This document shows positions 17,118 through 17,259 of a stretch of 64,000 nucleotides of DNA, piece after piece. Under the pieces are notes generated by a model that made no database searches, was not told where the DNA came from, and saw nothing but the letters and a program-made list of their open reading frames with translations. The position numbers and the translations under genes are program-made. Every line of letters begins with the position of its first letter. Positions within the stretch are counted from its first letter, which is position 1. The stretch lies in IMG/VR virus record IMGVR_UViG_3300035698_007246, positions 124,001 through 188,000 of that record. One strand, written 5' to 3'.

Positions 17118-17259
17118 ATAGACTACAAATTGAGTTTTTACTTATCCATTGCCTGAACCAATTCAGCTACACCCCTTCATCACAAAGGAGAGGTTGGACT
17201 CGAACCAACATACCACGGTTTTTGTAATTTTGATTGCTGTATTCAATCTTCAAGTCTAT
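17118..17259 (-). ncRNA. clamp element A with permuted, anticodon-less tRNA mimic
   Basis: P1 ATAGACT/AGTCTAT; clamp consensus; T arm and acceptor 3' strand precede acceptor 5' strand and D arm. Confidence 0.75.

Follow-up and report, generated by a model that had tools for sequence, protein, structure and literature searches.

A non-decoding tRNA look-alike in a phage tRNA array belongs to a family of clamp RNAs and is probably a Y-RNA-like partner of a Ro60-fold protein

The 64,000-nt stretch of DNA analysed here (positions 124,001 to 188,000 of virus record IMGVR_UViG_3300035698_007246; hereafter the window) carries 27-28 tRNA genes on its minus strand, spread over ~1.8-26.6 kb, with small open reading frames (ORFs) and HNH endonucleases in between. 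Within this minus-strand array lies clamp A, a 144-nt element whose ends pair around a tRNA-like body, and which is the subject of this work. The source record is a 223,879-bp virus, about 91% complete and with a GC content of 31%, that recurs in salt-lake metagenomes. Its replication genes (a gp43-like polymerase, UvsX, a DnaB-like helicase, a gp46/47-like nuclease and a Dda-like helicase) identify it as a distant T4-type myovirus; the polymerase is only about 30-33% identical to those of cultured relatives, and a blastn search of the clamp A locus against cultured phages gave no match. The record's ORF statistics agree with the standard genetic code, and the tRNA-Tyr of the array (long variable arm, 83 nt) indicates a bacterial host.

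Along the RNA, clamp A proceeds from the CCGU entry through the T arm, the closed acceptor hairpin, the UA dinucleotide and the D arm to the AUGG exit (Table 1). Its sequence lacks an anticodon loop, and both ARAGORN and the Rfam tRNA model leave it uncalled; it does not have the cloverleaf of a tRNA, in which an anticodon arm and a free acceptor end are present. An earlier note on this DNA had described the same anatomy, with entry at the 3′ strand of the anticodon stem, a perfect T arm, a closed acceptor and a D arm, and had claimed that a decoding loop is missing; the minus-strand sequence bears out the anatomy and, together with the two tRNA non-calls, the missing loop. Clamp A is a real, non-decoding tRNA look-alike within a conserved stem. 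Folded as a single sequence it is not unusually stable (z = -0.67), so that the support for it is comparative rather than thermodynamic.

A relaxed motif search with pairing rules found that the window holds nine clamps, every one of them on its minus strand at 17.1-22.6 kb. In particular, the 21-nt 5′ clamp motif is present five times (exact or near-exact), compared with 0.02 expected. Dozens of further clamps occur in related uncultured phages, drawn from IMG/VR and metagenome contigs, and in Salmonella phage FelixO1; for example, a contig with a syntenic tRNA island (L051) carries 12 of them. A scan of 185,579 bacterial and archaeal genomes for a clamp with a T loop gave five chance matches and zero real clamps, and the exact 5′ motif, searched alone, matched mostly coding sequence of the MKIEFSK type. 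In a promoter and terminator scan, the promoter signal around clamps A and B was at chance level.

The clamps enclose inserts of 50-300 nt in the window (40-300 nt across the family). Inserts of at least 80 nt mostly share one plan, with a T arm, a closed acceptor hairpin and a D-type hairpin, to which the closest paralogues of clamp A add a short, covarying anticodon-stem-like helix. The shortest clamps (40-57-nt inserts) contain just an A/U-rich hairpin, one insert is an unrelated 175-nt structure, and another, kept in L051, is a complete tRNA. Mini-clamps without a tRNA-like body keep the core, which makes the core, and not the tRNA shape, the shared feature; the clamp core is the common denominator and the tRNA shape is a frequent cargo.

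The family core reads N-GA-AGA..., then UNCAGCAA, and on its 3′ side ...UCU-G(U/A). Every clamp has an internal loop with N-GA opposite G-U/A, a 7-bp upper stem and the block N-U-N-CAGCAA. Across 37 distinct copies, the U at +15 is found in 37/37 and the AA after CAGC in 35-37/37, and neither feature was built into the search pattern. The lower stem (6-12 bp in the window, 5-21 bp across the family) has a different sequence in each copy and is always paired. The upper stem undergoes compensatory changes both within this genome (AGGCUGA/UCAGCCU, AGUUUGA/UCAAAUU) and in other phage contigs (AGAUUGU/ACAAUCU, AGAUUCA/UGAAUCU, AGAAGUA/UACUUCU, AGAAUGU/ACAUUCU, AGGUUGA/UCAACCU), and in the alignment the anticodon-stem-like helix covaries among paralogues and orthologues (CGU/ACG, GCAAU/AUCGC, UAUGU/ACGUA).

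Covariation was measured on a 14-member alignment of tRNA-like clamps, from which RNAalifold recovers the lower stem, the upper stem, the T arm and the acceptor hairpin. With the D arm included, 94.2% of cells pair, compared with 38-51% when the partners are slid; double-sided changes are present in 25/32 pairs, and no shuffle reached the observed covariation. The lower stem has double-sided changes in 10/10 pairs with 100% of cells paired, the acceptor-like helix has them in 6/7 pairs, and the D helix is the weakest of the family, with 71% of cells paired. Covariation shows that the 5′ and 3′ ends are partners in a two-part stem with a conserved core, and the alignments indicate that the family is under clear structural selection. 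Moreover, a covariance model (R1) built from 12 members, all from tRNA arrays and with clamp A left out, matches clamp A over its full length (model positions 1-143) at 96.2 bits (E = 7e-19), a score second only to that of a training sequence.

Three other readings of the core were considered and rejected. A hammerhead (CUGANGA) is inconsistent with the copies, where the C is not conserved. A kink-turn or box C/D element (UGAAGA/CUGA) would have a 3-nt bulge ahead of tandem sheared G.A/A.G pairs, with A at position 1n; here the bulge is 1 nt and position 1n is U in 35/37 copies; that no L7Ae-family protein is encoded also counts against it. A Bacteroidetes-type promoter within UCAAUUUG is abolished by compensated variants such as UCAGCCUG. 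Proximal hairpins (UGAA/UUCA; GAUUG/CAAUC with a 7-nt loop) can form in many copies, without consistent covariation.

At permissive thresholds, YrlA is the sole non-tRNA Rfam family that recognises the clamp bodies. Clamp A matches the YrlA model (RF02553) at 19.3 bits (E = 0.8) over 17119-17228, and the best scores are 36.7 and 30.7 bits among its paralogues and 42.4 and 32.1 bits in other phages. YrlA RNAs have the same tRNA-mimic topology and carry a GNCGAAN0-1G motif in their Ro60-binding stem, and Y RNA genes lie within about 4 kb of the Ro60 gene on the same strand (Chen et al. 2014, PMC4201824). Clamp A has this topology, with a terminal stem around a T arm, a closed acceptor-like hairpin and a D arm; the likeness extends to pairing of the 5′ and 3′ ends, the loop that closes the acceptor stem, the anticodon-stem-like entry, a basal motif containing GAA and, probably, the company of a Ro60-type protein (in bacteria, of RtcB as well). 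The GNCGAAN0-1G motif itself is absent: the clamp consensus is N-G-A-A-G-A (mostly UGAAGA) within a core of N-GA-AGA / UCU-GU and UNCAGCAA, and the clamp lower stem is not conserved in sequence. Further, there are nine clamps in one genome, interleaved with tRNA genes, and their partner would be a DUF2828/DUF7788 protein rather than a Ro60 of the Pfam TROVE family. In its predicted plan, clamp A is Y-RNA-like, yet it lies outside the curated YrlA family.

The protein in question is encoded about 385 nt ahead of the window start, on the same strand as the clamps, by a 485-aa ORF with Pfam DUF2828 and DUF7788 (G000:C1:122159-123616, minus strand; L189 18159-19616). Sequence searches of the Protein Data Bank (PDB) with this protein and with its profile found nothing, and Ro60 is seen only by fold comparison. 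An AlphaFold model made with a 72-sequence alignment has a predicted local distance difference test score (pLDDT) of 91.5, compared with 42 for a single-sequence AF2 model, and the 13 best Foldseek matches of the predicted model are all Ro60, Rsr or TROVE structures (1yvr: E = 2.4e-9, template modelling score 0.60). The model calculations therefore predict a divergent Ro60-fold ring protein. Homologues are present in 693 cultured-phage records, where their labels are 'RNA-binding protein', 'vWFA protein', DUF2828 or, in mycobacteriophages, 'Ro-like RNA binding protein', and in more than 4000 metagenomic clusters. About 7 kb from the Ro60-fold gene lies a gene for an RtcB RNA ligase (114401-115612, minus strand; L189 10401-11612). 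The same pairing, with the genes 4-7 kb apart, recurs in three other phage lineages (L194, L196 and L197/L198), and is reminiscent of the bacterial rsr-yrlBA-rtcBA operon.

In the flanks of DUF2828 homologues that are about 50-68% identical to the 485-aa protein, from phages of 25-45% GC, clamp cores lie directly upstream of the DUF2828 ORF, often in tandem and behind sigma-70-like promoters, with the last copy in the 5′ untranslated region (5′ UTR). A strict motif has 18 matches around nine genes, in zones that reach 1 kb upstream and 300 nt downstream, and these cover 7/9 contexts; outside those zones there are four matches in 217 kb, and shuffled upstream regions contain a mean of 0.012. 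Overall, family members adjoin the Ro-like gene in 7/8 other phage contexts, plus FelixO1; contig L196 is, besides the present genome, the other exception. R1 independently finds gene-adjacent RNAs, at 82.6 and 75.9 bits in L202 and 78.2 bits in L053, with weaker matches in L194, L197, L199, L200 and L201. For example, in the 132-kb contig G003 (L053) one clamp core occupies the 5′ UTR, and about two bases past the stop codon begins a full clamp whose body is tRNA-like. In FelixO1 (L204, AF320576.1), the DUF2828 gene is ORF86 and the tRNA array follows immediately; an Rfam search recognised none of the four clamps there (Table 1), one of which has a tRNA-like body that R1 matches at 48.9 bits (E = 4e-9). 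These results show a genomic coupling of clamps to the Ro60-fold gene across divergent phages.

Some mini-clamps have no lower stem and occupy the 5′ UTR ahead of the Ro-like gene, 14-30 nt from its start codon, and in at least two cases (L053, L200) a sigma-70-like promoter lies just upstream. Their placement looks like that of an autoregulatory operator, which suggests that the gene's expression may be autoregulated.

Two phage systems have comparable parts. Thermus phage phiLo encodes two Y-like RNAs upstream of its Ro60 gene; the Ro60 protein binds both, and it also associates with the host PNPase in a complex (PMC12135203). The likeness to the clamps includes a phage Ro60-fold ring with Yrl1 and Yrl2 directly upstream of the gene (PDB 9KOP, 9L5Y); these RNAs have a stem-bulge-stem with a (C)GAA motif, and it has been proposed that the complex hijacks the PNPase of the host. 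In the Felixounavirus Bas63, gp130 has a Ro60-like structure, lies upstream of tRNA genes and counters the ppl defence system, and its authors speculated that some 'tRNA genes' are Y RNAs (bioRxiv 10.1101/2024.10.10.617714). Judged from DUF2828 homologues in FelixO1-group phages, gp130 is apparently the same type of protein; no RNA was identified there, in contrast to the clamp family defined here with its four copies in FelixO1. ROT/TROVE proteins with tRNA-like partners have also been described in some jumbo phages (Aravind and colleagues, PMC7824862).

Taken together, clamp A is, with a probability of roughly 70%, a Y-RNA-like noncoding RNA of the tRNA-mimicking (YrlA) type, from an undescribed phage subfamily, that acts as the partner of the Ro60-like protein by the following mechanism. 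The clamps would be co-transcribed with the tRNA array and released by tRNA-processing enzymes, because the copies lie on the same strand and, for the most part, 3-6 nt from the next tRNA, and RNase P acting at that downstream tRNA would set their 3′ ends. For clamp A, whose downstream tRNA is truncated, the 3′ end would more likely be set at the stem followed by UUUUU. The paired 5′ and 3′ ends form the core (bulged N, GA opposite GU/GA, AGA/UCU and UNCAGCAA), which would dock onto the Ro60-fold ring of the DUF2828/DUF7788 protein, as the gene-RNA linkage, the fold homology and the binding of the Y RNA stem to the outer face of Ro60 suggest. The analogy with YrlA and with the Ro60 of phiLo suggests that a second factor would recognise the T/D elbow and the closed acceptor as a tRNA shape; candidates are PNPase, RNase P, enzymes that repair or process tRNA, and possibly the phage RtcB. 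In this scheme, the clamp RNA would be a tether or gate for the Ro60-like protein in the course of infection, serving RNA quality control, RNA repair or counter-defence. The idea of a tRNA-shaped scaffold rather than an adaptor, put forward in the earlier note, is favoured by this evidence but was incomplete, as it overlooked the YrlA topology, the clamp-family module and the Ro60-fold gene.

Several results weigh against this identification of clamp A as a Ro60-like protein's partner. The clamps of this genome are 18-23 kb from the Ro-like gene (clamp A about 18 kb), and none is adjacent to it. All clamps miss the Rfam YrlA gathering threshold of 69 bits by a wide margin, and the core nucleotides are unlike the canonical Ro-binding helix, with an unconserved lower stem and UGAAG instead of CGAA. 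The Pfam TROVE model does not match the 485-aa protein, and has no match elsewhere in this genome or in three relatives. Searches of public runs matched salt-lake DNA runs only, with no RNA run listed. The D-stem mismatch of clamp A and the dead tRNA downstream of it indicate that this copy could be decaying. Finally, the tight placement of clamps upstream of tRNAs also fits a pure processing role.

That last point leads to the strongest alternative, which is still unlikely: the clamps would be cis-acting elements for the processing or folding of a polycistronic tRNA precursor, similar to the RNase III stems that bracket rRNA or to insulators or recruiters of RNase P, with neither an excised function nor a link to Ro. 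In its favour, the gap between a clamp and the tRNA gene behind it is 3-12 nt for most clamps in every phage examined, a whole tRNA is enclosed by one clamp, and the tRNA elbow is a feature that RNase P recognises. A generic site for a double-stranded RNA nuclease would have no need for the invariant UGAAGA...UNCAGCAA...UCUGU core, and some copies are found in 5′ UTRs. Moreover, in the flanks examined, there are clamps beside DUF2828 genes with no flanking tRNA gene (L197) or with just one, on the opposite strand (L199).

A decoy or sponge, an idea of the earlier note, is less probable again, and no result of this analysis speaks for it in particular. Here, the tRNA-shaped RNA would titrate a host defence enzyme or toxin that targets tRNA, either apart from or alongside the Ro-like protein. 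Phage tRNA arrays, such as the one that holds clamp A, have been linked to the evasion of tRNA-cleaving defences, and the Ro60-like gp130 of Bas63 acts in counter-defence. Clamp A, though, offers neither the anticodon loop, which is the target of most known tRNA nucleases, nor the free CCA end, which is the target of acceptor-modifying toxins, and mini-clamps keep the same core without any tRNA-like body to present.

The region downstream of clamp A bears on whether this copy is alive. The orphan Thr-like 5′ half that the earlier note had placed next to clamp A is real, but is a gene remnant and not part of clamp A: in L051, an intact tRNA-Thr comes after the corresponding clamp, and the 36 nt align with the acceptor strand and D arm of this gene. 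The place of the missing 3′ half is occupied by a 115-aa ORF (16717-17064) that has no family and no counterpart in relatives. A CACCAGC 3′ strand was not found downstream on the minus strand, where the lone match (51095-51101) is upstream, and an intact tRNA-Thr is still present at 25098-25173. The half-tRNA is a truncated tRNA-Thr gene that once followed clamp A. Clamp A also has no one-to-one orthologue in the syntenic L051, and may be a younger or decaying copy. These neighbours, the lineage-specific ORF included, together with the D-stem mismatch and the missing orthologue, are what a functionless tRNA pseudogene or recent duplicate would show; nevertheless, such an origin is improbable, as every family-defining position is intact, the leave-one-out score is the second best, the family is, by its covariation, under clear structural selection, and a separate metagenome contig (L117) carries a copy identical to clamp A.

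A circularly permuted tRNA gene, whose ends would be joined into a functional adaptor as in red algae, matches the order of 3′ half, linker and 5′ half and the stem that brings the ends together, but is highly improbable, since joining the ends gives no 7-nt anticodon loop, the internal loop UGA/GU beside a 7-bp helix is no bulge-helix-bulge, between the helix and the anticodon-like stem lie 24 and 12 nt of non-loop sequence, the closing loop has no CCA, a splicing endonuclease is not expected in the bacterial host indicated by tRNA-Tyr, and other clamps contain an intact tRNA or no tRNA-like body. Permuted tRNA genes of the Cyanidioschyzon type and two-piece tmRNA share with clamp A the 3′ half before the 5′ half and the linker-joined acceptor ends; in contrast to clamp A, which has neither, they mature with an anticodon loop or an aminoacylatable end. 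The T4 RNAs rnaC and rnaD (species 1 and 2) are likewise small stable RNAs in the tRNA cluster of a T4-type phage, and rnaC ends in a T arm with acceptor-like pairing; they differ in having neither the clamp core nor the arrangement of closed acceptor and D arm. R1 has no match to rnaC or rnaD, and its lone match in T4 is weak and over the tRNA-Gly/Leu genes.

Conservation of Y RNAs and Ro60 extends from bacteria to humans; what they do is still poorly understood, and phage versions are newly studied. The clamp family is missed by current libraries, as Rfam 15 returns sub-threshold YrlA matches only, and no published description of it was found. It is tied to a widespread phage protein family whose usual labels are DUF2828, 'RNA-binding protein' and 'vWFA protein', and would be the missing RNA partner proposed for the Ro60-like counter-defence gene of Felixounavirus; its FelixO1 members make this testable in ordinary laboratory phages. 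Some 'tRNA genes' or spacers in phage tRNA arrays belong to a different RNA class. The Y RNA/YrlA kind is known; the clamp family is new, as are the distinct core that defines it, the way it has expanded inside tRNA arrays and the link with a widespread, poorly annotated phage protein. More speculatively, and on balance doubtful as a whole, large phages could have a dedicated ribonucleoprotein system, in which a Ro60-like ring is served by a modular repertoire of clamp RNAs from the tRNA array (tRNA mimics, a clamp-held genuine tRNA and other cargo domains), is autoregulated through its 5′ UTR, guards, repairs (with RtcB) or polices phage and host tRNAs, and acts in counter-defence like the gp130 of Bas63.

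Table 1. Clamp A, its parts, and related features (window positions unless a contig is named)
Feature	Position	Strand	Basis or remark
Clamp A, complete Y-RNA-like tRNA mimic, 144 nt	17117..17260	minus	Sequence; leave-one-out covariance model; sub-threshold Rfam YrlA match
Lower clamp stem, AAUAGACU paired with AGUCUAUU	17253-17260 with 17117-17124	minus	Fold and family covariation
Internal loop UGA / GU, between lower and upper stem	GU at 17125-17126	minus	Fold
Upper stem, AGAUUGA / UCAAUUU	17243-17249 with 17127-17133	minus	Position table of 37 distinct copies; covariation
Conserved core, 5′ side (loop UGA and upper-stem strand)	17243..17252	minus	
Conserved single-stranded block AUACAGCAAUC	17232..17242	minus	Family consensus N-U-N-C-A-G-C-A-A
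CCGU, 3′ strand of 4-bp anticodon-stem-like helix (entry)	17215..17218	minus	Pairs with AUGG exit, 17146-17149
Perfect T arm, GUUGG-UUCGAGU-CCAAC	17193..17209	minus	Sequence; stem covaries in family
Acceptor-like helix closed by GUGAU loop	17170..17192	minus	No free 3′ end, no CCA
UA resembling U8/A9, ahead of D arm	17168-17169	minus	
D arm, GCUG-AAUUGGUU-CAGG, GG in loop	17152..17167	minus	One G.G mismatch at the 10-25 position
Remnant 5′ half of tRNA-Thr gene, acceptor strand GCUGGUG and D arm	17077..17112	minus	4 nt after clamp A
Clamp B, 339 nt; same core, T arm, very long closed helix	17271..17609	minus	Orthologue L051 13099-13308
Clamp around complete tRNA (18833-18906)	18802..18947	minus	Motif/pairing and model R1
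Clamp with T-arm-bearing insert, 3 nt upstream of tRNA-Gln	20267..20448	minus	Motif/pairing and model R1
Clamp with tRNA-like body, 19-bp closed acceptor helix	21222..21408	minus	Rfam YrlA 30.7 bits; R1 69.5 bits
Closest clamp A paralogue, most canonical tRNA-like body	21643..21781	minus	Rfam YrlA 36.7 bits, E = 8e-6
Mini-clamp, 50-nt insert without tRNA-like body, 5 nt upstream of tRNA-Glu	21885..21965	minus	Motif/pairing and R1
Clamp with compensated upper stem AGGCUGA/UCAGCCU, 175-nt non-tRNA-like insert, 5 nt upstream of tRNA-Lys	22103..22308	minus	
Mini-clamp, 4 nt upstream of tRNA-Ala	22438..22530	minus	Motif/pairing and R1
5′-UTR mini-clamps	L053 (G003) about 5610-5690 (-); L200 3939-3976; L202 3950-3987; L194 9697-9745; L197 9924-9973		
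Four unannotated FelixO1 clamps	L204 5709-5787, 5876-5945, 6333-6408, 6411-6559		Between tRNA genes; core AGA-AGACCNN ... NNGGUCU-GG

The tRNA held by a clamp at 18833-18906 has a counterpart in L051 (11722-11869). It scores 68 bits with Rfam and has an encoded CCA, and its body is nearly identical in the two phages; the anticodon differs (CAA compared with ACA in L051), and, for a 'Leu' anticodon, the variable arm is short. This tRNA may not serve in decoding. At 21452-21517 (minus strand), a T arm and an 8-bp acceptor closed by a loop starting ACCA match the acceptor part of beta and permuted tmRNA at 40.1 and 27.2 bits, both sub-threshold, and R1 weakly at 20.8 bits; possible readings are a degenerate clamp and a tRNA-like RNA in two pieces that may have a CCA end. 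In Aeromonas phage PX29 (L203, NC_023688.1), an annotated two-piece 'tRNA-Leu' at 7889-8069 overlaps an R1 match of 32.5 bits, and the annotation may be a misread clamp RNA.

Two small, unrelated ORFs (17589-17834 and 18926-19228, both minus strand) end in Glu-Asp-stop through the clamp core GAA GAU UGA, which means that the clamp starts inside the end of the upstream ORF and in the same frame. A 142-aa ORF at 17909-18337 (minus strand) has a Lys-rich C-terminus and falls in no Pfam or PHROG family. It is conserved at 40-50% identity, immediately ahead of a clamp in both L051 and L055, and with clamps nearby in L058; clamp B and its L051 orthologue are each preceded by this conserved ORF. It may be an additional partner, or its conservation may be mere synteny.

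The tRNA island also holds a Mom-like DNA-modification gene (14599-15489, minus strand), an R2K-clade ATP-grasp gene (15863-16711, minus strand) and HNH endonuclease ORFs at 5808-6527, 12049-12429 and 25825-26319. An amber-suppressor-type tRNA (anticodon CUA) is present at 9485-9560 (minus strand), despite ORF statistics that fit the standard code, and in two other phages similar tRNAs lie no more than 4 kb from the DUF2828 gene (L199 8183-8259 and L200 7541-7614).
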